Source of the DNA: Pecten maximus
Taxonomy: Eukaryota
Assembly (NCBI RefSeq): GCF_902652985.1
Contig: NC_047016.1
Span: 28,086,001-28,150,000 of the forward strand
DNA: 64,000 bases
Reading direction: 5' to 3'
A program made the translations under genes and the position numbers. The notes below the pieces were generated by a model. That model made no database searches. It saw only the letters and a program-made list of their open reading frames with translations, and was not told where the DNA came from. Shown in pieces: positions 44,251-61,837 of the stretch; the first letter of the stretch is position 1; each line of letters opens with the position of its first letter.

Positions 44251-47200
44251 TCAGCGGCCCAGCTGATTGTCGATTGCCAGACTGCCGTCAACACACGTGT
44301 TAGTAATGGGATCAAAAAAGTCCAGTCCGTTGTTGGTACAGGACTGCAAGTACATATGGCCCGTCAAATCACATTGGATATAGTGATGGCGATCACCAAG
44401 CACAGGGAAAAACAGTTTCGCGTGGCTGATGTGGTCCGCGTCACAGGGTGTAGTGAACAGGGGACATTGGCTACAGAAGGGATACGCCCCGTTGATTGAC
44501 GGCGTGTTAACCACCGGAAGTCCTATGGTTGGAGGCGCTGTCACAATGCCAGAAGGGTTGGTGACTGAATTTCCATTACAAGTTCCGGGGGCTGGTGTAT
44601 TAGGCACGAATGAGTTTGGATTTACGCATGACTGTGATGACTGCTGGAAGTAGAAATTTGGCGGATTGCATTGGCGTGTGAACGACTCATGCCAGAGATC
44701 ACACTGGATGTACTTCGTCGGGTCACATGGGTATGTGTACAGTAACGGGCCATCAGGAGCTCTAAGATGACAAGGGTTAGCAATATTGGAGGGCACGATA
44801 CAGGTCAACTCATGCTGGTCCCATTCCTCTCCTGTGGGACACGGTCGTACCCACGCCTTCCCCCACACGTCGCAGTGGATAAACTTGGTTACGTCGGACG
44901 GATAAGTGAAGAAAAACTTGTTCGCCAAGATTGCTTCTACTGAACAGGGATTTCCTATGGCGTGGGCGAGCGGGGTTCCTAATACGACGCAGGGTGTATC
45001 AGCACCAACACACTGCTTACAGGCATCATAGTAGGACTCGTTCTGGGGGCATTGTACCACATACAGCTTACCCTGGTTATCACACTCCAAGTATTTGGTA
45101 TGATCATCCGGATGTGGAAATTTGGTGATTCCAGCTAGAAGTGTTTCCTTGGTGCAGATATTGCCATAACCCCAATGTTCTGCAAATACAGAAATTGAAT
45201 GAAACTTTCAGACACATACTAAACATATTATTTCAATCAAGGTATTCAGAACATGAAAATGGTGGTGCTGTCTGTGAGCCATCTTCACTAGCCAAGGCCT
45301 CTGATTACGTTACACTCCATGAACGTTCGAGGAGTGTAACGTAATCAAAAGCCTTGGCTAGCGAAGATGTTTGTGAGCTTGCTCTTGCCTTCTTAATTAC
45401 TACACTGCAATACGTGTTAAATAATGCTCATAAAAATGTATTTGTCGCGACTACAGTATTGATGTCTGGGGGTGTAGCAGATCGTACATCAATCAATTAT
45501 CAAAATGATAACCAACCCTGTCTTATGATCTAGTCCTTTGTACTGCTATGTATCTTACCTTTACAGTCGTCTGGACACTTGATCTGTACGCCGTTCTGGT
45601 AGCATTTGATTTCTGTAAGAGAAAATCATCATAAGGATTCAAACAAACGAAGTTTTATTATTTGAATCATGAATAGGAACAACAGTCTTTCGACCAGAGT
45701 GTATATGATCGCAGGCTTCATACAGCAGTTAACACAGCTCTTTCTTGTTCTTTAAATAACACACTGCTGAGACCGTTGGTAAAATCAATCATGTCAAATG
45801 TATTCATGTTTATCGTTTACTTTCTTTCAAAAAACATCTATAGGACTTTAATAAAGATGCTTCATCTCTGAAAAACAGTAACTATGATAGATAGAAAACA
45901 AGGGCCGTTATATACATGTATTTATATACAAATCCAAAAGTTACAATGTAATTTACGCAATTATCACCCTCCAAACGTTTTCATCTTCTTTTTATTATCT
46001 TTAGAATTTAAAATGGAAAATCTCCAAAGAAATTCCATCGTACGTTTATGCATTTCTGTTTTGTATGATCCTTCTGGTTTCGTAGGAGATCATTTTAAGA
46101 CTATTTTATTCTACTTTCTTGGTGTTCACTAGATAAATGCGTTTTTATGAGACATTGCGTATATGTTGTCGGTCGGCGATCTCTATGCGGCGAATTAGAT
46201 AATACAGATGATAATTTATGTAATTACCATGGTCACGATGATCCCCATTGTAGGGCGTTACGTTGATGGTACAGCCCCTGGTCCCATTGGTCAATTTGAG
46301 TGCATCCCCTAAACCCATGAAAAGAGTCTGGGTGGTGGTAGTATTTCGGAACACGATTCCAAGATCAGTAGCCTCGGTTTGAGTTTGCGTTTCATAGTAT
46401 GAGTTTCCAGGGTATGGGCTCCCGAACGCCGTGAATAATGTGATTTTACCGCAGGTTACATTAGTCTGAAAATATAAGATATAACAGGTGATTACATTAT
46501 CTCTATAGAGAATAAGTAATGAAGGAATTGGATAAGTAATGGGAGAATTGAACAAGTAATGATGTATGGCTAAGGAATGGAATGGTGAACTGCATGATGG
46601 GAATGTTTAATTATTAGTTTTGATCCATTTAAAGTCTTAATTAGTAAAGAGAAACGAATAAGTAAGGATGGAATCGAATAAGTAATGGGATAAGTAATAA
46701 GTAGCGAATATGTAATGATTGAATCGAATGAGTAATGGAATAAGGAATAAGTAATCAATTTCACGGAGGTTCTCTATAGAGAATATCCAGCGAGTAACAA
46801 TTTGGTTAAAAGAATACGGTCTATAGTAAGTATCTAGCGAATGATAAAAGGGGATAAACACAATCAAGGGAAAAACTGTAAACACTATCTGATTGAGGAG
46901 GAGAAAATACATTTCAACCAATAATAAAACACAACCTTAGTTTTGATCATATGAAGTATGATAGCTTAATATCATTTCAAAATTACCTCTACAGTAACGC
47001 CTCCTGGTGGTGTAATGACAGCAAGGGGAGGGCACTCTTCCATAACACACGTGTAGGTGTGGTTCATTTTAATATATAAGGGTGCTGCCAAATAAAGAAA
47101 AAATGCAAAATATTATTTACACAATCAAATGAAAATAATTGAACTACTGCTTAGATTAGTCAGGAAGTCAAACTATGGTATGTAATTACTGACAACTGCA

Positions 47201-50200
47201 CCCGTGAAGGAATGTTTCAGTGTTTGACAGTATTATACGTTTTAGTCATATTTGCTGTCCAAGGGAAGACAAGGCGGGTCGGTAAAACTTGGTTAGCGAG
47301 GATGTGTTTTAAGTAAGACAAATACTCATTATTGCTTAAATATATCAAATACTAAATATTTGCCGCTAATAGATATATCTTTCTTATGATCTATCAATTA
47401 ATTGTCAAGTGCTGAATAGGGATGCATATTCATATTCTCTTATGTAATAGAAACATTTTTACATTAATGATGTAGTATAAGTGAAACTTAATTTTATGAA
47501 AACACATTACAAGTATACTGTATACACGATGCTTCCTCAGAGTAGAGAGGGGAGCAAAACTCATATCTAACTTAAGGACGTTGATCCGTTGGTTTTCGGT
47601 AGAGGTCATTTCTGCAATGTTTTGTGTATTTGGATTACAGTAGGGACTAGCCATGTCAACATAATGTTAAATACCTTTTACACTAAGGTATGATTATCTG
47701 TACACCTATATTCTCGTTACCTCTACATGTCTTTTCCTGAATCTCTTGTTTAAGAGCCGTCAGGTCAGTGAACCCAGACACCGTCATTACGTGTGTACAT
47801 GACGGACTTGTTGCGATGGCGTTGAGCTCGCCTTGATTGATATGGCTGCCCACACCAATTGTAAATGTGACAATGTTGTTTACATGGATGGCCTCGGCAG
47901 CGTGCAGTGTATTCAGGCGGTCATTGGAAGCGCCGTCCGTGATGACGATAAGGACCTTCACCGCATCCGTCCGGCTTCCGTGAGACACCTAAAATGGCCG
48001 TGAAGTACCATATATCCTTTTCCTCATGACCTAATTGGTACCTAATCCATTGCGTTAAGTTTTGGGATCAACTTATCTTTCTTACCTTTTTTCTTTAAAA
48101 AGCAACAACAAAAGCAAGCAAATTTGCAGTTAAATTTTTCATGTAATAAAAACTAATATAGCAAGCACATATATTTATATTGCTCAAAGAAACAGCTGGT
48201 ACTAGCCGATATGAACATGAAATTACTATAACAGGTTCTGGCCAATGCAACTTCGTTAAAGGTAAGACTAATTGGTTTGAGATCAATTTAAGCAGAGAGA
48301 TATCTATTTTTGAAGTGAGTTAGCTACCTGGAAGACCTCCGTCAATGTTTTCTTGAGAGCTTCGTCAGTTGCAGTGGTGCCACTATCAAATGGTATGTTG
48401 TCTATTGCAGTAGACACGTCGCTCTTGCTGTTGTACGTGTCCAGAAAAAACCTTGTAGTAGCATGTGTGGAGTAGGTCACCATAGCAACCCTTGTCTTGT
48501 CCGGCGAGACAGGGAAGTCGTTGATGATGTCCTGAATGAACATTTTCGATCGTAAATTATCATCGGCGGATAGACTGTTAGACTGGTCCATAACAAATGC
48601 CAAATCTATCTTCTTTGTGTTTGAACAGCCTAAGGAAGAAAGTTAACAAAAATCCTTTACTGTTCAATAAGAACAACAAGTCATAGCAAATAACAAGCAC
48701 ATTCTCAACCAATTATTTACATGTAGACAATTCCTTTGTCTTAAAAATTCAAAAGGGCATACATCCTTAAATTGAATTTAAAAAAGCCCATTATAGGTAA
48801 TATACAACGCAACGTAGACAACGCATGCATGTACATTGTATTACAGAGGAGTGTGTTAACAAAACAAATCTCCCTAGTTTACCATCTACGCATATGGTTA
48901 GCGACTATATCATATCCTCGCCGTAGAGAGCACTTGCCATCCATTCAATAATCACTATCAATTACACGTGATACAAAATGCCGAGTTACAATGAAGAATA
49001 TTCATTGGTTTATTTATTACGTTAAACTTTAGTTACTTTAATTTAAAAAAATCGGCAGATGGCTATTAGTAACATTTGGAAAAATAGTGAACATTTACAC
49101 TGATCATTGACAAAAAACAGCACGTGTCTATAAATTCACACAAAAAAACAATCTATACTGAATTATACCTACCTTGGGCAAGTATTTCTGCAAGATTGGT
49201 GAAATTGTTTCCACCCATACTAAGGAAATTATTGGCAAAGAACTGGCCCTGGTCCTCGATCCGCCATCCCACGCCTCCATGTATCTTTGTGAAGAGAGCG
49301 GCGGCTATCCCCGAGTACAGTGGCTTCCTAAGATCATTCCAATTTACCTCGCCCCAGTCTATATTGAACTTCTGCACAAGCATGTCATATTCGTGGAGTA
49401 GTTGATTGTTGTATTTCGTTTCCAGGAACTTGGGAAGGCTTAACTAATAATGAAAAGGTTGAGGAACATTAAAAGTGAACCTGGTCTGTCAAAAGAGTTA
49501 TTAAGTTGTATTTAGTTACATGTATATAATATTGACAGTTATTATATTTAAATGGATACTACAGTGTTAGTACTATTTATATGACGTAACAAAGACATTT
49601 TTATGTAAGCTGTTGTCAAACCAGTTACATTTAACATAAATCCTTAAAATTAGCAATTGATAGGTTACTGATAATGTCCATATAGGGATTGAATGGGTTA
49701 ATTTGTCATTTTCATTGCGGCTATGAATAGCAATAGCTTTACAGTTTCCAGTCTTTTTTTATTTTTGCTTTTTGCTTTTTATTCAAATAATGTCAAATAC
49801 AATAATTCGTGTTAAATTATATCTATTTTATGTGAATAGCAAAGAGAACGAAAACCATGTTTTCATGCTGTATTCATTGTGTGTTCATGGTCAAATGTTT
49901 GCTGTTTCAATTTGGTAACTTCATACAAAGAATGAACACTCAGAATATAAATATATTTAAGTAGTAACATTAATTTTCCGCTTTTTGTGCTGAAAGCCTT
50001 CCGCTTGATAATGAATGCGCTAATGGCACTAATACAGGTATGCATCATTGTGCTAATCTGTTTTAACCCAATTATAGAATAAAATTTGATTGTACAAAAA
50101 TATACAAACTACAGTATATGATTCTTTCATTTAATACTTACCTGCCATATACCTCCATCAAAACCAGGGCGGTACGTCTTCGGGTCGGTTCCGTCGTAAG

Positions 50201-50390
50201 ATTGGACGTACGCCAGACGCCGTAAGAAGCCTTTGTCGTCGGCAAACAGGCACGACTCTCGAATCCTGGAAACAACTGCTTCGACCACATTCGCACCATT
50301 ACCCCCGGGTTGCATCGTCTGATCCAACCCCAGGGTACCTACTATCACACCAGCACAGAAAATAGACACACACACTGCTATAGTATTCAT
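44251..50390 (-). CDS. Secreted multidomain protein, paralog A: signal peptide + lysozyme/SLT-like domain (Gln at putative catalytic site) + VWA + beta-rich domain + 4 chitin-binding type-2-like repeats; exons 50390-50142, 49443-49173, 48629-48328, 47988-47721, 47084-46987, 46465-46228, 45612-45559, 45179-44251 (~802 aa)
   Basis: All 7 introns GT-AG and phase-consistent. Hydrophobic N-terminus MNTIAVCVSIFCAGVIVGTLG; VWA DLAFVMDQSNS (DxSxS)...GTTAT...VLIVITDG...FTIGVG; four repeats of NPC-x-FPHPxDxTKYIxC-x-C-x-C in the last exon. Confidence 0.9.
45280..45369. mobile_element. Short palindromic MITE in an intron
   Basis: catcttcactagccaaggcctctgattacgttacactcc / ggagtgtaacgtaatcaaaagccttggctagcgaagatg inverted arms. 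Confidence 0.65.
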
Positions 50391-53300
50391 CTTTGTAAAT
50401 GAATAATAGAAGCAGTGTGAAGTCGACGTATGTTATTCTTATCAAAAACTTCCTTGTTAGAGAGTCAACCAAATGTCATAGTCACTGTGTAGGAGATAAT
50501 GGAAAGCATATGTTGATGCACGAGCGGAAGCGTCTTATGTATGACTTTTTCGCGTGCATGCATTCTGATGATCGTAATTACTTATGTAACCAGCTTTAAA
50601 AGCACGTGCTAGTAGGACGGTACATCACGCTCAGGATGATCTGTACTTATATGAGTCATACATTGTTACTTACTATCTTATATTAAATTCCTATTTAAAT
50701 ATGTTATTCACTTTTTTGTCTTCTGTTGAGTTCTGTGAGACACCTGTGTATTTGAACTTGTCGTTATTTTGAAAGAAAACAATTATAAAACATATTACGT
50801 GATTTATTTCTACGTTCTTTGTAATTGTCAGTAATTCGTTGATAGGGCGTATGGTATCGCAAACGTATCCTACACTATCATTCCTTTGAATTAAATTTGA
50901 TATTTACTTTATCACCAAGAAAACGCTTATGTTGAATAACTGATTGTCACTATTTATATTGTTGTCATATGTGGGGATGTAGATCAGACAAATACTTCTT
51001 GTATATGGGCAGGGAAGAGCAATGAGTCTTACTGTGGTTGCCATCTGCTAAAACATGTCGGATTGACATTTTCCTGTTATGCCTTCAATTGGAAATTATT
51101 TATCTCAGTTCCATTTACTTAATTGTTTTGCAGGAGATGTATTGTCCCCAATTGCAGTATCTTGGTTGTCGTCAACAATCGGCCGAATTGTTGCGACTGG
51201 AATATATTCCTGGCTGTCAGATGTCAGCTAGTACTGATGACCTCTCCAAAGGACAAACTCTGATAAACCATTCCTCCAATGTGATGTATTTTCGCATGTG
51301 ATGACGTGTGTATTTATAATCCTACACAGGCTTTATCTTGGTTTACCAGCCCGCCTATAATCAGGTATTTTACACATTGTTAGTCACGTTATTCTAGCTG
51401 TTATACACAGACTTATTTGTGTACATTGCTGATTTTTTTTATATTATATTATTCAATCAGATACATGTAGGTAGATAAAACACAAGTTGTGATATCCAGC
51501 ATTATCTAGGACTGCCCTCCTGTCGCAGAACATTTCCTGCATTACTTTTTAATGTAAAAGGCTTATTTAGCTAACAAATATATCCAACAGTTTGCACCTT
51601 TTGCAACACAGTTACAATAAAAGCAACAGGTTATAACCACTTACATGTATTTCATAGCTGATGTTACAATTAAACACTCAACTGCTTGTGTGGTCGAGTA
51701 ATACTCATTATTAACGGGTTAAATGTTCACTATCGCGGCCTTTCGGCCGTTCAGTGGACGAGTCATCCAATTACACCAAACGTCACAGGTATAACTACTA
51801 ATGTACTGGCGTGTTAAACGGTATGAGTCAACCCCGTATGTAATCCAGTTACACTCAACTTTGTAGTCATAACTCATGTTACCGGCGTGTTACACAAAAA
51901 TCATCTCCTAAGCCATTTACACTAAACTTTGTAGTGATAATTACTGTCATCAGTTAACCTAAACTAATCGGCATGTAATATATTTGTAAATATGATGTAA
52001 CCAATCACATTATATTATAATCCGCCAATAGGAATTAATCTACGTGTTTAAAGTATAGTTTTACAATAGTCTTTATAATGTTTTTATCTATTTGATAGAG
52101 TTAACTCCGTTATGAGAACTATGAAAGGTGATAAGACAACAGCCTGTCTAAAAAAAACGCGTGACATTGTTCCACATTCATACTTATCGATATGAAAGAC
52201 GGATTCGAGTGATTTTACGTATGTTACCTTTCGGATCTTATCTTAATAAATGTCTAGACATTGGCCTTAGCATCACTACTTAGCATACGTCGGGTGAAGT
52301 AAAGTTTAATTACCTGGATTACAATTAAAATACTAATTCATTTGGTTATACGGATCGCTTTGGTATGTTTTGTATTGTGATTATTTGTGCGTCAAGGGAT
52401 ATTTCAGGTTTTAAAAATGTTTGAGTTTATTAATATAAATCTTAATACGATGAGTAAATAGCTTTAAAGAGGTTCACATGAAAACCTCTCATGCATGATA
52501 AGATGAAGAAAATAAGAAAATGCCTATGCATCATTCACAATAAGATATAGTGCAGGTAAATTGTCTAAGAAGTTAAAATTGAACCTACTACAGTATGTAA
52601 CAGATCACATTATAGTAATTACGTATTGGTGTACAATCATCTCCACCCAGATATTGCTAGAGACATGCGCCATATTGACATATTAAACAGGCGCATTTCA
52701 ATTTAAATGTTGTATGAGGGATATATATTTAAGCGTCTTCTATGATAGAATTCAAGTAAATTTTCGTTTTAAATGCTTTATTATTATTTTGTTATATTTA
52801 TTCTATTTCATATGTTTTGATATTTTAGATTTTTAAATGTTACATGGTGGACATATATTAATCTAATAACCGATTATTAAAAAAAAGACAGAAAACTTGA
52901 CATTTAAAAACCAAATTCAAAATTCTTTTTTAAAGTACGAGGGAACTACAAACAAAGACATAGATGCACGAAGACCATTGAAAACATACAAAGGGAATGC
53001 GACCATGTGCTGTAATAGGGTAAGCGTCTTCGACGTCATCGACGACACCTGACATTTAAATCTAGGTACAATCCTTATCACATTCTCAAAACCATTCTCC
53101 AATTGGTAAAGATCGCATGTATATTTTTTGTCCATATTCTGTGGTTGTATTCATGAGTTTTAACGAAAGAATTCATAATTAATGATATAAAAGTACTGTA
53201 CATGGAAACTTACTTCCACAGGTTTTCTGATTAAATAAATGTTTCCTTTGCTTTGCTGTGTCCAGGTTCCATGTTGTGGTTTTGTAATGAGTTATCATTA

Positions 53301-53697
53301 TATCTATATATATATTTTATCCATAAAGCAGAAAGTTAATCTGATCTCCTTTCCCTCAATAAATGGAAAATAAAACATTGGTGTTGTAAAAAATAGTTTA
53401 TTACGTAGCTTTAAATGTTTAATGATACATTTGCATTGTATAATGCAATATCTATCTAGCTAATGTGGAACTGGGTATATCACATTCATGATATAACTTC
53501 GTTATCGTTACCAGTTGGTGAAAAAGTAATACGATTCTGTCACAGTGATGATGGATTTTACTGAATACGGCCAACATTTCTGTAATCATTAATAACATGC
53601 TGCTTTCACTTTTACTACATATTGTCATTCAGCCATAAGTCGGACATTGATTGTTGCTGATAATTTCTGTTCATGACTCAAGAAAATTGCCTATTGT

Positions 53698-56600
53698 TTA
53701 TTTTTTGCCTACAACTGGGACGGGAACAGTACTCATGACGAACAGACCTCTTGGCACGCAATTGAGGATATCCTGCCTCCAAATGAAGTAGGGTTTGCAT
53801 ACTTTCTCGAAGGCGTCTCCATACTGGTCACAGTGAATATACTTCTGGGGATCACTGGGATGAGGGTAGAAGAAAAGATCAGGAACGGTTCCACATGGCT
53901 TACTGTTAGATCCAAAGGAGCCCTTGGTGGGATCTACAACAACCTCTCGGTACAGACAGGTGAGTGTGGCCTGGTCCCAGAAGTGGTGAGGATCGCAGAA
54001 CTTCACCACAGCAACATACGGGAGATTGTAGCATTCGATGTATGCCTGATCATCGTTAGGATATGGAAAGAAAAATAGTCCATTTAGAATGTTTTCTGGT
54101 GTGCAGGGGTTGCCAGTCTGGACGACAGCGTTCGTTGGTCTTGGTGTAACTGACGGCAGAGGGGTCATGGTGGTCCTGGGGAGAGTGAAGGTCATCGGCA
54201 TTCCTGGTACACACGTCTGTGCCTGAAGATCAAATACTTCCATAAATGGACATAGCACTTCAAACACGTTACCATGTCCATCACAGTACAAGAAGCGGTC
54301 GTTCCTCAGAGGGTGTGGGAAGATCTGGATACGACTGCCTGAGCATGGGTTGGGGATAGCTGAAAAGAAAATCAGGTTTTTCCGTCATAAAAATGAAAAA
54401 AAATCGATTTAAGATATCTTACTATACGTTATATCGCTCCCATGATATATAGAAACGTTTTTCTCTACCTTAAAGCACATGATATACCGATATAATCCAG
54501 GTCTCAAATTTACAACTCTATACGGTATATCGATATGTCGTGTAAACACGAATTCCATGCAAACATGTCATCTCGGATTGAACTTGAAGAAATCATAAAC
54601 TAATTGGATGATGTTTTCATCCTTCTTTATTAAGGAGACGATATTTCTCCTTTTACAAATAATACACCACTATCAGCATAAGTTTCCTATGTTGTTATAC
54701 TTACAGTACGGTGGAGGGACAATCATGTACTGGCTACCGAAAAGTGTCTGGGCTGAGCAGTTGACAATGATCCGTCCAGCTTCTATACACAATAGGTTGT
54801 TATCTACAACACACAAGGCGTAGTTAGAATTTGCCTGGGTAATATTATATATGACTTTGGGTTCTTTGGATAATTAATGTCAATAGAACTTTAAATAGGT
54901 ATACGGATTGCTGTAACATCACTATAATGCCCCGTTTCATCCATATTCCTTAATTTAAGTCCAGAATTTAAATAGAAAAGTTTAATTGGATTTAACGGCA
55001 AAGAATAGTTAAGGAACTATCCTGTAATAATATGCTTTCCTATGACAAATTTTAGTTGAAAAATTAGCTTAACTTAAGGAGGATTGATGAAATGTTTGAT
55101 AATACTTACATGGTCGGATATTGTTTCCCTCCTCTACTGTAATGTTAAAGTTTCCGGCACACGTCTTGGTAGGGTATGTGGACATGACGGCCAGAGCCAC
55201 TGACCTGTTACCCCTCACATAGAACGACTGACCAGCGTTGATGTCGGCGATTTTGTAGAACTCATTCAGTACAGGACTGGGGTTTGCTGACGTCAGAGAT
55301 CCAAACACTGAGACGGTGCCATCAGTTGGTGTGATCTATATACCAGTAAAAGTTAATTTAATACTGAGGAATTACTTCAACATAAGTCATAGAGGGTCCC
55401 ATTTGTTCTTAAACAACTCTAGTGCGTACGGATTTTATGCTTTAAGTTGCCATATATGCATACTGTACACGTTCATATTTTAGCGGTTATGTTATTTTAG
55501 GGATTTTTGCGATTGAAGCATTCTGCTAAGTTATGATTGCGCTAATTGCACTTTCGATTAAACTGTTTCTATATTAAACAATATTAGCGCGCCAATTCAT
55601 CAATGCGCTAATCTGTTAGAATTTGAAAATGCCCCAAAAATTGAGTGCGTCAAATAAAAGAACGTTTACAAGTATGCTGCTCAAATATTTTATTGCAAAT
55701 TTAATGTTTTCTATATGTGTTAAATACTAAGAGGCGTGGTAGGTCCTAGCTCACATTTACAGTTCTTTACATATTTTCAATCAAACAATTTAACATTTGA
55801 TTTCTTAATATAAATTCAACTTCATTTTATGTGGTTTTGTTGTTTAATGGTACGTTTCATTTGACTTATATGGCTGCTGAGATATCGTCATGCTTTGTCG
55901 TAAAACATCTCTTCAGAATTTCTTGTATACAGTTTGTTTCTTGTTGTTATAATGTTCACTCCCTCTGTATGTATTTAAGCATTGAACTGTTTTTGTATGG
56001 TATTTATGATCTATTATGGTCGCGTGTTTTTTGGCAAACAAAATAGTACATGGAAAGTTTTTTTAAAAACTCAATTTTGTTAATCATTTGATTATCAACG
56101 TAATGCACAAATGGCATATTTTTCATAACAAATAATGTAGACAAAATAATTAGTCGTTAAACTTAATTATCCTGGATATTGTTGTTCCGGTATGTGTTGT
56201 ATTAATACGCTGATAAGTGTAGCGCGTGATGGGTGGCATTTAAAAGTACATCAACGCCAGAGCTCTCAAACAGACTACTAGTATATAGTGACAATGCCAG
56301 ACAAATGTAAATATTGAGCTACCAACACCGGTATCTTACCGTGACTGTGGTGCCTGCTGTGATGTTGGGTAAGATCTGCACGTTGATGTCACTTCCACAA
56401 TTGTACTGGTAGTTGTTTGGGGTCAGGATGGCGGCGGCTATAACATATCACCATGTCTTCTCTCATATTGTATATTAACAAAGAGTTATGCCTTATTAAA
56501 TTTCTTGGGGATATATTGAAGCCGCATGTATCCAGACAATTTCACTGCATTAAAGTCCAGTCGCTTCCCGTTTCGTTCTACCCATGTCATCGCCCTAGCA

Positions 56601-59600
56601 CATTATTTTCTTAACAAATTTAATGATACTTCATAAAAGTGTAGTGGAAAAGTGTCTCTAATTAGTTCTTAGTTCAGGATGTAAAGGTCAATTACTTCCT
56701 ATAACAAATATTTTGATCAAATGATAAAGATGTAATGTATACTAGCATGTCAATACGTCTTAATTCAGCACACTTATATATATATATAAATGTGATTACA
56801 TCTCAAGGGAACAACCAACCAATTGAAAAAAAATATATTTTTGAAACAGCCCCTGTGTATAGAAAGTTGAGCCAAGGATAAAATGTCTGGCAGCCACTGA
56901 TTGGCCAGTATGTTATGAAGTGAGAAAATAGATATGTAGCCTGATAGGTAACTATCAATAAGAAATGTTGATATAAATTTCGTAAGTCCGATTGATTTTT
57001 TCCCAAAAGTTGAGCTGAAGGACTCAACTTTTTTTTTGATTAGGTGTTATATCAGACCCTAAATTTTTGTTATAAACCATAATTGTCATATTGAATTCAA
57101 GAATTTGAATGAAATACTCCAAAACGTTAACACTAAGGTCTATGGGAAAACAATTGGTTGGTTGGTCCCTCAAAGTTGTTCGATACAATATTACGGAGAT
57201 ATAACGTTTCACGCGTTTCATTTCAAAAGTATTATTTCTTCCCGCCAGTTATCAAGTTATTGCTGCTATCAAAACTGTTCTTTATCACAACCCCACGATA
57301 CTGTGCTCGGCATAGATATATAAACCCATTCGATTTCTGGTATTAGACACTTATGTATTCATATGAATTAACGCGATACACTTTTTAACACAGTCTGGGA
57401 CATATTTACTTACCTTTACATGAAACACTCTGGATTTCAGTTTTCAGACTGTCCAAGTCAGCGTAGCTGTTGAGAATTTGTGAGTGAGTACAGCTAGGAG
57501 CACTGGCAATCCCGTCTAATTCGATCTACAAGTAAGTATTTTATTGTTTGTTTTAGCTGAATGACGAACAATGACTTTAATTTAAGTTTCGAGATTGGGG
57601 ACATCCGTATAAGGGGGATGACCATGACGCCATCAGATTTATTAGATTAAATCATCTTTGGAGTCGTACCAACACCACAGGACAGAGTTGCCTACCTTGT
57701 TTGCACTTTGTGTGACTCCGAGCGTGAAGATGGTAATTCCACTTCTTCTGGCGTTGTTGGCAGCAATTTGTGTGTTAACTGTGTTTTCTGACCTACCATC
57801 AGTGATCAAAATCATCACCTGTATAACAGAGAGGACAAATGTTGAAGTCGGTTTCTACTCCAAACTTCCTTTCCCATGACATGTTCTATTGTGTCTAATG
57901 ATTTTAAACTACCGTGGACATCTTAGTGTATCGATAGTTCGATGATAATTGTAAACTGCTGTGGCCATTGTAAACTCACGTGGACATTTTACTATATTCA
58001 TAGTTCGATAATGATTGCAAACTCCCGTAGACATATCACTGTATTGATAGTTCGATGATAATTGTAAACTGCTGTGGCCATTGTAAACTCACGTGGACAT
58101 TTTAAAATTAAATGGAAAGATTGAGAAAAAGATCACCGAGTAGGGTGAGAGTACTTTACAGAATGAGAGTACGGTGTAGGGTGAGAGTATCGGGTATGGT
58201 GCGAGTACTTTATAGAATGAGAGAATCGGGTAGGGTGAGAGTACTTTATAGAATGAGAGTACGGTGTAGGGTGAGGATATCGGGTAGGGTGAGAGTACTT
58301 TATAGAATGAGAGTACGGTGTAGGGTGAGGGTATCGGGTAGGGTAAGAGTAGTTTATAGAATGAGAGTACGGTGTAGGGTGAGAGTACCGGGTATGGTGC
58401 GAGTACTTTATAGAATGAGAGAATCGGGTAGGGTGAGAGTACTTTATAGAATGAGAGTACGGTGTAGGGTGAGGGTATCGGGTAGGGTGAGAGTACTTTA
58501 TAGAATGAGAGTACGGTGTAGGGTGAGGGTATCGGGTAGGGTGAGAGTACTTTATAGAATGAGAGTACGGTTTAGGGTGAGAGTACGGAAGGGATAGATT
58601 TATTCTCACGGCGATGCTAATGATATCATGTACTTGAAGAAACCATGAAGATAGACAAAGTGAATATATCCCCAGAGTTGAGATTACTTTTATGTCCACA
58701 CGGAAGAGAATTCTTACATAAACCTAGCAAAGTGTTGGACGTTTACCTTAGCCGCACCGTTCCGTGCACCATTAACGGTAGAGAAGACTTCATTGACGGT
58801 TTTGTCAATGGCGGCTGCAGTATTGGTACCGCCTGGACTGTAGACAATACCATCGACCGCCTTCTTTACTGCATCCTTGGAATTGAATTGGTTCAGCAGG
58901 AAAGAGGCCTTAACAGCTGTGCTGAATTCTACCACTCCAACACGAACAGTTTGTGTTCCGATGTCGAACTGGTCGATCACATCACTAACAAACTTCTTTG
59001 TAATGTCAAAATCGGTAGGAGACAGACTAGCTGAGCTGTCCAGGACGAAAACTAAGTCAATAGCATTGGTGCTGCGACATCCTGTCAACAGAATCAGGGA
59101 TGGTTACTGTAATTACCGTGTACAAATAACAAAGATAAGTTCTGTTTCTTATATAATGTGTATAGCTTTCATTGATCTTCATTTACTCGTTGAAATATGT
59201 ATGGAAAAGAAATAAATTATATCAAAGCGGTGATGAGGAACTATTCCAGGTTCTGACTTATTTGTTCGGAATTAAAGCCCAAAGACAGATCTTCTTTAAA
59301 TGTGCATGGCATTATTATGTTCAATTTGATGCCTGCATCATTACTACATCTTTAGCTTTATTTCGACAAAAGGAAATTAAAAGATATGTGGTCATTTTCG
59401 TTAAAATGTTAATGTGTTTAAAAACAATTACAAAACATTGTTACCAATAACATTGCCTGGTCTGTTCAATGCATATAACTAACCTCCCTGTAACTCGTTT
59501 ACTGCACTGTAGTATGCATGGGCCTCAAAAATGGTGTGCTTGGTGGTGTTGATCCAGAATGAGCTCTGCTTCTCCACTGAGCTTGGAAGGGAATCCGAGC

Positions 59601-61735
59601 CCGCCTTCAGGAGCGTATACAGAGCTGCAGCCACCCCGGAGTAAAGAGGCTTCCTCAGGTCCTCCCACCTAGCGGCTGACCAGTCGATAGTAAGAGTGTT
59701 CCTAAGGAGAGCCCTGGCTGTAGCCAGCATCCCAGACGTTTGTGTCTGTAGGAACTGGTCCTCGTCAATCTATGTATAGAAATCATAAAATAAGTATAGC
59801 TAGTGTAAAATTCGGTTTTACGTTAGGATTTATAATAGCAGTCAACATCAATATACTAATTCCATTTCCGTGGTAGAAAATGGTATAAATACCATATTCA
59901 ATAGAAAGGAACATACCACTTTATTAGTTATAATTGTGAAGAGTTTCAACCCTTAGATTTCCGTCTGCATGATATCGAGATGACACGGCATCAAACGTAT
60001 TGCCTTACTTTTTAGCTAAATTATCAAGGTATAATAGGCTTGGTTTGGTGTTGCTTTCTGTTCAGCTCAGCAACAGCCTTAAATTATAGTATAAATATTT
60101 TAAAGGTATTGAGTTGATCTTCTATAGTCCTTTCTTTCACATTCTGAACAAATATAGTTGAAGATACGTTCGATAAATCTAATTTAGACAGTGCTGCTTC
60201 AAATATTTAAATCATGTGTGTTCAGTTAATCTGCCTTAGGAATATCAAAACTGAAATTGATATCGAAATGTATCGGATATTGATTGTAAGTTACATACGG
60301 AAGAACAACGATAAGATGAACAGTATCAAATGCGAGATCATTTCTATGATACCCTGATGAAACAAGAAAATGTCTATAGTTTGATATCTTCTAAACAGAA
60401 GCTAGCGAAATAAGATTGTTTAGTTAAGTTACACAACATACCAATATACATTTATCATTCCCCTAGTTTCGTACTATAAAAACTACGATATACATGACAC
60501 GACATGTTTGGCCACAATGTTTGACCTGTAGAAAAATAAACATAGATACATCAACGAGGTCTTCCAGTAATTTAAGCATCCGCATGGTAAAATATTTACC
60601 ATTGTATGGCACTGCCACTATATAACCCTACCAATTCAGTTGCGAGTTCACAAGCTTTTGAACTGCCAACTGAAATTTGAATTTGAAAATTTCAAAAAAA
60701 AAATCGCACGACAAATAAAAAATCGCAGATGGTAAATATAAGCATTGAACGGCTTTCAGTTGGCATTCATAGTCAATATGAATGCCAACTGAAAGCCGTT
60801 CAATGCTTAAATGAACTACAGGGTTTACCGTAATTCCCAGTAGATATTATTAGTAATTATCATTATTAGGAAAGTGATTTTAAAACGAGATTGAAGTAAA
60901 CTATATTGTGTTTTATCAATGCTGCCGATACAAGATCTTGTTCATAAATACTGTTAACATATTTTAGCGATAATCCTGTTTAAGTGGTTTTCACGTTAAA
61001 AACGTTCTGCTGAATGATGATCGCGCTAATTGCAGTTTCTAGCAATGTGCTCCAGAATAGGTACGTTTACGGTAGCTTGTTTATATTTGAGATAGCCGTT
61101 TCATTGAACCTTAAGGTTTATTAAATGGTAAAAATAATAATAATGATAGCAATAATGATACAATAGTTTTATCATATTTCTGCCTAGCTTAGTATCATGT
61201 GTCTACATATAATCATAATACAACTTAGGAGTTGCACAGAATCCTAATCCTTACTGTTTGTATACATATATGTTATTAATTGACACACACCTGTGATTTG
61301 CATATGCATTTATTACAAGATGTTTATATACCAAATATCGAATATAGATAACCGCATCATAAAGTCATTTTCGTCCATCTGACTATTCAGTAGTGCTCAA
61401 TCAGTAAATGAGTGAAAATCCAGAAAACATGTACACCCATACAAGGACGTTTGAAATGATGTCCTTTTGTCATACTAACAACACTAACTCACCTGCCAAA
61501 TTCCACCATAGTACCCGAACCTGTAGGTGTCGTTAGCCGTACCGTCCTTGGATTCAACATATGCCAACCTTCGGAGGTAGAGTTTGTCGCTTGGGAATAT
61601 ACAGGACTCGTGGATGAGATTGATCACAGCCTCCACTACGGCAGAGCCACTGGCCTCGGGAACCCTTGTTTGATCCTGTATCTGGCCACTACACAGATAC
61701 ATCAAGCCCAAACCTAACAGTATTCTTGAAATCAT
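53698..61735 (-). CDS. Secreted multidomain protein, paralog B: signal peptide + lysozyme/SLT-like domain (Glu retained) + VWA + beta-rich domain + 3 chitin-binding type-2-like repeats; exons 61735-61493, 59769-59484, 59081-58747, 57818-57696, 57525-57414, 56437-56340, 55335-55110, 54803-54705, 54359-53698 (~727 aa)
   Basis: All 8 introns GT-AG and phase-consistent. Signal MISRILLGLGLMYLCSG; YLRRLAYVESKDG...GGIWQ|ID; VWA DLVFVLDSSAS...GGTNT...VMILITDG; three NPC/KPC...PHP...C...C...C repeats with a Pro/Thr-rich linker. Confidence 0.9.
57910..58102. repeat. Degenerate intronic tandem repeat
   Basis: gatagttcgatgataattgtaaactgctgtggccattgtaaactcacgtggacatttt occurs at ~57932 and ~58046, with partial copies between. 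Confidence 0.7.
58141..58590. repeat. 18-bp-monomer minisatellite (~25 monomers) with higher-order 54/36-bp arrangement
   Basis: Monomers tagggtgagagtacttta / tagaatgagagtacggtg / tagggtgagggtatcggg; lies in an intron of paralog B. Confidence 0.93.
60571..60812. mobile_element. Third (inverted) copy of the fold-back element at 20855-21350
   Basis: Reverse complement of ~21190-21350 plus the terminal hairpin taagcattgaacggctttcagttggcattcata...tatgaatgccaactgaaagccgttcaatgctta. Confidence 0.85.
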
Positions 61736-61837
61736 TATGATTTGTCGTTTGAATTACAAAAAACAAACTGAACTAGCCTCCTCCTATAGGGGAGAAGTAT
61801 GGCCAGGTATATTCGCTCTCCAGTTCCTAGGTGAGAG

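Follow-up and report, generated by a model that had tools for sequence, protein, structure and literature searches.

A 64,000-nucleotide stretch of the genome of the scallop Pecten maximus (RefSeq assembly GCF_902652985.1, contig NC_047016.1, positions 28,086,001 to 28,150,000; hereafter the window, in whose coordinates positions are given unless another sequence is named) carries two tandem genes, A and B, encoding proteins in which a VWA domain and chitin-binding repeats of the CBM14 type are preceded by an N-terminal domain of about 155 amino acids (the N-domain). This locus raises the question of where the N-domain comes from and what it might do at the head of a putative matrix protein. 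Our analysis assigns the N-domain, on the strength of profile comparisons, to phrog_3108, a family of phage proteins of unknown function, and predicts for it a lysozyme-like fold. What is new here is this kinship with phages, and with it a new family in the lysozyme-like superfamily and a new subfamily architecture among proteins that combine VWA and chitin-binding domains (VWA-CB).

Two paralogous genes share an N-terminal domain ahead of a VWA domain

Within the window, which contains no undetermined bases (N), we identified two intact paralogs on the minus strand, gene A (44251-50390) and gene B (53698-61735). An earlier note on this DNA had described two paralogous genes sharing a domain of about 155 amino acids before a VWA domain and Cys repeats; both genes lie where it had placed them, and the motifs that it quoted are present as written. 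In both proteins the domain order is signal peptide (an N-terminal hydrophobic signal, read directly from the sequence), N-domain, VWA domain, beta-rich spacer, and CBM14 repeats, distributed over the following exons:

Gene B exon 1, 61493..61735, minus strand: signal peptide followed by the first half of the N-domain (LAYVESKDG, GGIWQ), in a transcript that reaches beyond 61750.
Gene B exon 2, 59484..59769, minus strand: second half of the N-domain (WEDLRKPLYSG).
Gene B exons 3-5, 57414..59081 (58747-59081, 57696-57818, and 57414-57525), minus strand: VWA domain with intact DxSxS, from Pfam, RNA joints, and tblastn.
Gene B exons 6-8, 54706..56438 (about 56337-56438, 55111-55347, and 54706-54801), minus strand: end of the VWA domain and beta-rich spacer, from tblastn and the AlphaFold2 model of the ortholog.
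Gene B last exon, 53698..54357, minus strand: Thr/Pro-rich linker, CBM14 repeats, and stop codon.
Gene A exon 1, 50142..50390, minus strand: signal peptide followed by the first half of the N-domain, in which Gln replaces Glu (LAYVQSYDG).
Gene A exon 2, 49173..49428, minus strand: second half of the N-domain (WNDLRKPLYSG).
Gene A VWA exons, 47720..48633 (about 48307-48633 and 47720-47988), minus strand: DxSxS intact.
Gene A spacer-domain exons, 46229..47085 (about 46987-47085 and 46229-46471), minus strand: from collinearity with homologs.
Gene A last exon, 44251..45180, minus strand: three CBM14 repeats and stop codon.

Gene B runs from an ATG at 61735 to a stop codon ending at 53698; its exon 1 ends in GGIWQ at 61493, directly before gtgagt, and its exon 2 (59769-59484) opens with IDEDQF and contains WEDLRKPLYSGVAAALY. 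Gene A runs from an ATG at 50390 to a stop codon ending at 44251, with exon 1 ending at 50142 and exon 2 (49428-49173) bounded by canonical AG/GT sites. In both genes, exon 1 ends in GGIWQ followed by GTAAGT or GTGAGT, and exon 2, after a canonical AG, contains W(E/N)DLRKPLYSG. Identity between the two paralogs amounts to 62% in exon 1, 39% in exon 2, approximately 40% in the VWA domain, and 32% in the C-terminal exon. In both genes, Pfam recognized a VWA domain (E = 1e-29 and 3e-21) and, in the last exon, CBM_14 (E = 3e-10 and 3e-13), and it gave no match for exons 1-2 of either gene. The DxSxS motif of the metal-ion-dependent adhesion site (MIDAS) is kept in both VWA domains, as DSSAS in B and DQSNS in A. 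Among named proteins, those of two other scallops, Argopecten irradians and Ylistrum balloti, are closest. The A. irradians ortholog P0001 (726 amino acids) matched nine gene B exons in order, at 70-97% identity and without stops (tblastn), with 91% identity to exon 1, and gene A is collinear with full-length homologs of Dreissena and Mercenaria.

Each gene encodes a single secreted-type protein that combines a VWA domain with one or more CBM14 domains. The same combination defines the VWA-CB dcp family, which includes Pif and BMSP, is expanded in molluscs, and is used partly in the shell, half of the family being expressed at other sites (PMC6231486; PMC11291548). The two proteins resemble this family in placing peritrophin-A (CBM14) repeats and Thr-rich linkers after a single VWA domain, in being secreted, and in forming part of a mollusc expansion (PMC6231486; PMC11291548). 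Unlike in the published descriptions, which do not mention such a domain (PMC6231486; PMC11291548), a lysozyme-like domain stands at the N-terminus. The proteins also differ from Pif and BMSP in having a single VWA domain (BMSP has four), in lacking a Pif80-type acidic region, and in ending after the CBM14 repeats; Pfam matched no laminin-G domain in the window exons or in P0001. Our literature search found no description of a VWA-CB protein with a lysozyme-like N-domain, and none for the motif GGIWQ or for a lytic transglycosylase together with mollusc and VWA. The architecture, which the earlier note could not assign to a named family, is therefore undescribed in the literature searched as far as the N-domain is concerned, but its VWA and chitin-binding part belongs to a named one (PMC6231486).

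The N-domain belongs to a phage protein family

The N-domain exons of genes A and B served singly as search queries, and the full-length homologs P0001 and P0072, the latter a short one, represented the whole domain in searches and folding. Searched against phage genomes by tblastn, P0072 matched the 636-kb uncultured phage LR756504.1 in an open reading frame (ORF; E = 6e-11) and, more weakly, Shewanella phage 1/44 and N15-like Klebsiella phages, including Gp54 of phiKO2. In an hmmscan against PHROGs, the matched phage proteins fell in phrog_3108, as did the animal homologs P0072 and P0052 (E = 6e-14 and 4e-13; profile positions 28-156 of 160). One gastropod-type member, one springtail member, and tandem-domain members matched the phrog_3108 hidden Markov model at 1e-3 to 3e-6; bivalve full-length proteins, including P0001, have diverged too far to match it directly, and the single exons of the window gave no direct match either. 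Profile A2, which includes the four N-domain exons of the window (two from A and two from B), aligned in hhalign with the LR756504.1 ORF at a probability of 99.6 (E = 2.4e-24; 31% identity over 133 columns, with the Glu aligned) and with a bacterial prophage-type ORF at E = 1.6e-8. As judged from sequence, membership of the window N-domain in the phrog_3108 family is secure.

The N-domain and the phrog_3108 proteins (phiKO2 Gp54, S144_44 of Shewanella phage 1/44, and the LR756504.1 ORF) are homologous across the whole domain of about 150 amino acids. They have in common a helix-end Glu-Ser/Thr, the motif G-x-(W/F/T)-Q, and an I/LDW..W.DL..PLY core, and basal animal forms additionally share YWKxxYNTxxGxGT with the phage family. 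The phage proteins differ in being stand-alone proteins of 150-200 amino acids without signal peptide, VWA, or CBM14 domains. In bacteria, 46 of 301 sampled Pseudomonadota genomes contained phrog_3108, and 2-4 copies per genome were frequent. At the two bacterial loci checked, an 83-amino-acid ORF of phrog_1103 (function unknown) lies downstream, and this was the only PHROG found among the neighbors of the two genes.

Phage-type peptidoglycan-hydrolase domains in animal genomes have been described before. Phage-derived GH24 lysozymes exist in bivalves (PMC5303276), and in rusticalin of ascidians a phage-type peptidase domain is fused to a Cys-rich domain (PMC6339383). However, these belong to other catalytic families (rusticalin is an L-Ala-D-Glu peptidase) and lack any fusion to VWA and CBM14 domains; they are precedents for the kind of event, not for the N-domain family. 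The main text of a 2026 survey of arthropod transfer-fusion genes makes no mention of VWA.

The N-terminal exons are spliced to the VWA exons and the architecture recurs among animals

Contigs from public RNA runs were mapped on positions 57300-61750, which span exons 1-5 of gene B. One RNA contig of 2528 nt links exons 5-4-3-2-1, and the joints 57525/57696, 57816/58745, 59080/59483, and 59769/61493, found in runs from three studies, are all GT-AG on the minus strand. Since RNA contigs join exons 1-5, exons 1-2 belong to the VWA transcript, as expected from the gene models of the earlier note. In one run, the summed contig depth reached about 3500 over gene B exons versus about 5 in introns, which indicates that gene B is strongly expressed somewhere.

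A HMMER search with gene B exon 1 recovered 495 cluster representatives at E ≤ 1e-3, 186 of them at E ≤ 1e-10. The full-length members, which come from bivalves, gastropods, the cephalopod Argonauta, and two springtails, keep the order N-domain, VWA, and CBM14 throughout; they carry database names such as "uncharacterized," "collagen XII-like," and "matrilin-3-like," and their precomputed Pfam domains leave the first 180 residues uncovered. Some members (P0007, P0035, P0038, and P0196) have three tandem N-domains, and at one of their loci a VWA ORF lies downstream, so that the N-domain can be multiplied ahead of VWA. Proteins of about 200 amino acids that seemed to consist of the N-domain only were rejected as such, as they are first exons, on contigs of more than 1 Mb, with a VWA ORF 29-66 nt downstream. 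A third P. maximus copy, on contig C13 (13859323-13868000), has the same exon order, with the N-domain in two exons followed by the VWA domain, the spacer, and C-terminal repeats, and is collinear with homolog P0040 to the end of the stretch analyzed.

Given that the nearest non-animal relatives are phage proteins, the N-terminal exons might be suspected of being an assembly artefact, a phage or bacterial contaminant, or a separate gene wrongly joined to its neighbor. This explanation is refuted by the RNA: the N-domain of gene B is interrupted by a 1.7-kb GT-AG intron, and RNA from three studies joins it to the VWA exons. It is also at odds with the position of genes A and B, 28 Mb into a chromosome-scale contig, with the three genomic copies that share one exon order, and with the recurrence of this architecture in bivalves, gastropods, a cephalopod, and springtails, and we consider it next to impossible.

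The N-domain has a predicted lysozyme-like fold and a probable remote link to lytic transglycosylases

A model of P0072 built from a 150-sequence alignment reached a mean predicted local distance difference test (pLDDT) score of 87.6, with 96-98 in the core, and its helix 59-68 terminates at E67-S68. The full-length AlphaFold2 model of P0001 (mean pLDDT 85.7, and 94-98 over most of the N-domain, residues 21-140) has a helix 53-62 that terminates at E61-S62, followed by the VWA domain (184-365), a beta-rich domain (369-490), and three small Cys-rich beta modules. The beta-rich domain, confidently predicted between the VWA domain and the chitin-binding repeats, has no Pfam match. Foldseek returned no PDB row at E < 1; its top rows, which are not significant, were the Ralstonia GH23 chitinase, phiKZ gp144, and MltE, and the best structural matches (VIA) were mostly peptidoglycan lytic transglycosylases. 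In BFVD, uncharacterised phage proteins share the predicted fold (template-modelling scores of 0.63-0.73, best E = 7.5e-6) and rank above annotated SLT and goose egg-white lysozyme proteins. These models give the N-domain a lysozyme-like fold, as the earlier note had expected, and place the Glu-Ser pair at the end of the second core helix.

Profile comparisons linked the domain to the SLT/GH23 lytic transglycosylases. The animal profile aligned in the right register with a 43-sequence SLT profile (P = 0.046); with three phage proteins added it did so at P = 0.02, again in the right register, and scored better than 30 of 30 column-shuffled controls. A 13-sequence phrog_3108 profile of phage and prophage proteins matched the 43-sequence SLT profile at a probability of 72 (E = 3.3e-5), placing ..A.qES.. 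on ..Ii..ES.. and G(V/L)(F/T)Q on GLMQ. This profile match, supported by the fold, makes it probable that phrog_3108 is distantly related to SLT/GH23. The VES of gene B, at its helix end, aligns with E64-S65 of MltE, and GGIWQ aligns in register with GLMQ, with Leu-Met replaced by Ile-Trp. Of the three GH23 motifs that had been read from the window in order, the first (Glu-Ser) and the second (GLMQ) are borne out by these alignments, whereas the DLxDP..N...GA.YL helix is confirmed by none of the alignments with SLT.

Direct searches gave no such link. Pfam, PF01464 included, gave no match to the N-domain in the window exons, in 19 family members (at E ≤ 10), or in the phage members, and PF01464 had no match in a six-frame genome search. 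Against PDB sequences (hmmsearch), the N-domain profile retrieved no lysozyme and the full-length profile retrieved VWA structures only. The hhalign comparisons of A2 with the single sequences of MltE and Slt70 were not significant (E = 0.2 and 0.13), and the alignment with Slt70 was rejected as out of register. The family also differs from the SLT/GH23 enzymes (PF01464; E. coli MltE and Slt70, phiKZ gp144) in a C-terminal half with other signature motifs, and in being encoded by eukaryotic genes that contain introns and join the domain to VWA and CBM14.

The helix-end glutamate is ancestral but repeatedly lost

Glu occupies the motif position in 140 of 177 motif matches (about 80%), and the Ser/Thr that follows is nearly universal. 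A tree built from 87 animal and 3 phage domains shows Glu in every phage row and every basal animal branch, with at least eight changes away from it and one eight-member clade that lacks it throughout. The tree indicates that the Glu is ancestral and was lost at least eight times independently; the conservation required by the earlier note thus holds for most homologs, including all phage and basal members. Gene B has the Glu, and gene A and the C13 copy have Gln, followed by Ser. The same replacement of Glu by Gln was made in PDB entries of MltE and Slt to inactivate these enzymes. The positions more conserved than the Glu are structural, the invariant ones being L119, P122, S125, and Q149 of P0001.

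This pattern of loss bears on whether the N-domain is an enzyme at all. It could be a non-catalytic glycan binder in all three scallop paralogs, a lysozyme-derived lectin comparable to alpha-lactalbumin and chitinase-like lectins, in which case the proteins would be structural cross-linkers of chitin and matrix like Pif and BMSP. The Glu is absent from 20% of the family, with one persistent Glu-less clade among its independent losses, two of the three scallop copies have Gln, the invariant positions exclude the Glu, and VWA-CB dcp is known as a structural shell-matrix family (PMC6231486). On the other hand, about 80% of members retain Glu-Ser/Thr, as do all phage members and every basal animal branch; the Glu stands at the catalytic position of lytic transglycosylases; and loss on side branches is typical of enzyme families that yield pseudoenzymes. 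We regard a purely binding role in all three paralogs as rather unlikely, although it carries appreciable weight.

Gene B may encode a matrix-tethered muralytic enzyme

With modest confidence, we favor the explanation that genes A and B encode VWA-CB dcp matrix proteins with a lysozyme-fold head of the phrog_3108 type, and that B is a matrix-tethered muralytic defence enzyme. The CBM14 repeats would anchor the protein to chitin, in the shell matrix, the gut lining, or another chitinous surface, and the metal-dependent VWA domain would bind a protein partner of the matrix. The N-domain of paralog B may cut a beta-1,4 N-acetylglucosamine-type glycan, with the helix-end Glu as general acid, and its most likely substrate would be bacterial peptidoglycan, which would make B an enzyme of defence. 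Paralog A and the C13 copy, with their Gln, would probably only bind glycan. Linkers of the O-glycosylation type are present in the multi-domain proteins. The analysis thus supports the secreted glycan-cutting module tethered to chitin and matrix that was proposed in the earlier note, as an interpretation in which catalysis and substrate are predicted.

Several points qualify this interpretation. Paralog A has Gln at the position of the Glu, and both the catalysis and the substrate of the N-domain are deduced by comparison with its relatives. The closest of these in sequence are the phrog_3108 proteins and not SLT or goose lysozyme, the link to SLT being remote (E = 3e-5, through the phage family). 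In addition, the VWA and chitin-binding part already has a named family of its own (PMC6231486).

Peptidoglycan is favored as substrate because every non-animal relative comes from a phage or prophage of bacteria. Circumstantial support comes from phiKO2, which has no other annotated endolysin and in which gp54 (phrog_3108) directly follows gp53; the small Gp53 is holin-like, with three membrane-spanning segments and a basic tail, suggesting that Gp53 and Gp54 could be a holin-endolysin pair. In the phiKO2 genome, the two are encoded at 46768-48190, downstream of a putative late promoter. A spanin pair formed by gp55 and gp56 was unsupported, as gp56 has no lipobox.

Chitin is the other substrate to be considered. 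Held on chitin by its CBM14 repeats, the N-domain could be a chitin-remodelling enzyme, with a parallel in the GH23 chitinase of Ralstonia sp. A-471 (PDB 3w6b-3w6f). That enzyme is bacterial, has 14-16% identity over the structural alignment and another type of chitin-binding domain, and its activity has been demonstrated, whereas activity of the N-domain is predicted only. The closest relatives of the N-domain reside in bacterial phages and prophages, where peptidoglycan is the sole plausible substrate, its best structural matches are mostly enzymes acting on peptidoglycan, and we identified no second carboxylate matching the base of the GH23 chitinase; taken together, this makes a chitin-remodelling role distinctly unlikely.

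Extending the matrix-tethered enzyme back in time, we tentatively propose a scenario that we consider possible but short of probable. An ancient transfer of a phage muralytic gene of the phrog_3108 type into animals would have founded a new glycoside-hydrolase-like family; its fusion to VWA and chitin-binding domains would have spread in molluscs and springtails as a matrix-anchored lytic enzyme, repeatedly giving rise to dead binders (A, the C13 copy, and an Aplysia-containing clade), and phrog_3108 itself would be the endolysin so far missing from phiKO2 and other N15-like phages.

The mollusc shell literature treats VWA and chitin-binding proteins as passive scaffolds. If our explanation is right, a probably catalytic lysozyme-fold head would give the chitinous matrix an enzymatic or antibacterial role, which would explain the expression of half of the family outside shell-forming tissue, and would be a further likely case of animal co-option of a phage cell-wall enzyme. 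The N-domain is in neither Pfam nor the annotated PHROGs; defining it would give a name to about 500 animal protein clusters and to a phage and prophage family that about 15% of the sampled Pseudomonadota genomes contain and that may represent a class of endolysins not recognised so far. The adjacent natural Glu and Gln paralogs of the window are suited to the study of the change from enzyme to pseudoenzyme.

Repeats in the introns of gene B

Within intron 1 of gene B, positions 60578-60875 showed a summed depth of about 550-1500 in four of four RNA runs, with the flanking intron near zero. This segment contains a 36-nt inverted repeat (60736-60771 and 60777-60812, 97%) and is probably a repeated element, similar to miniature inverted-repeat transposable elements, that is transcribed from other loci. 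Intron 3 contains two minisatellites, at 58140-58586 (units of 54 and 198 nt) and at 57896-58104 (units of 113 nt), which account for long spurious ORFs (58112-58597 on the plus strand and 58133-58699 on the minus strand) and for a local peak in GC skew.

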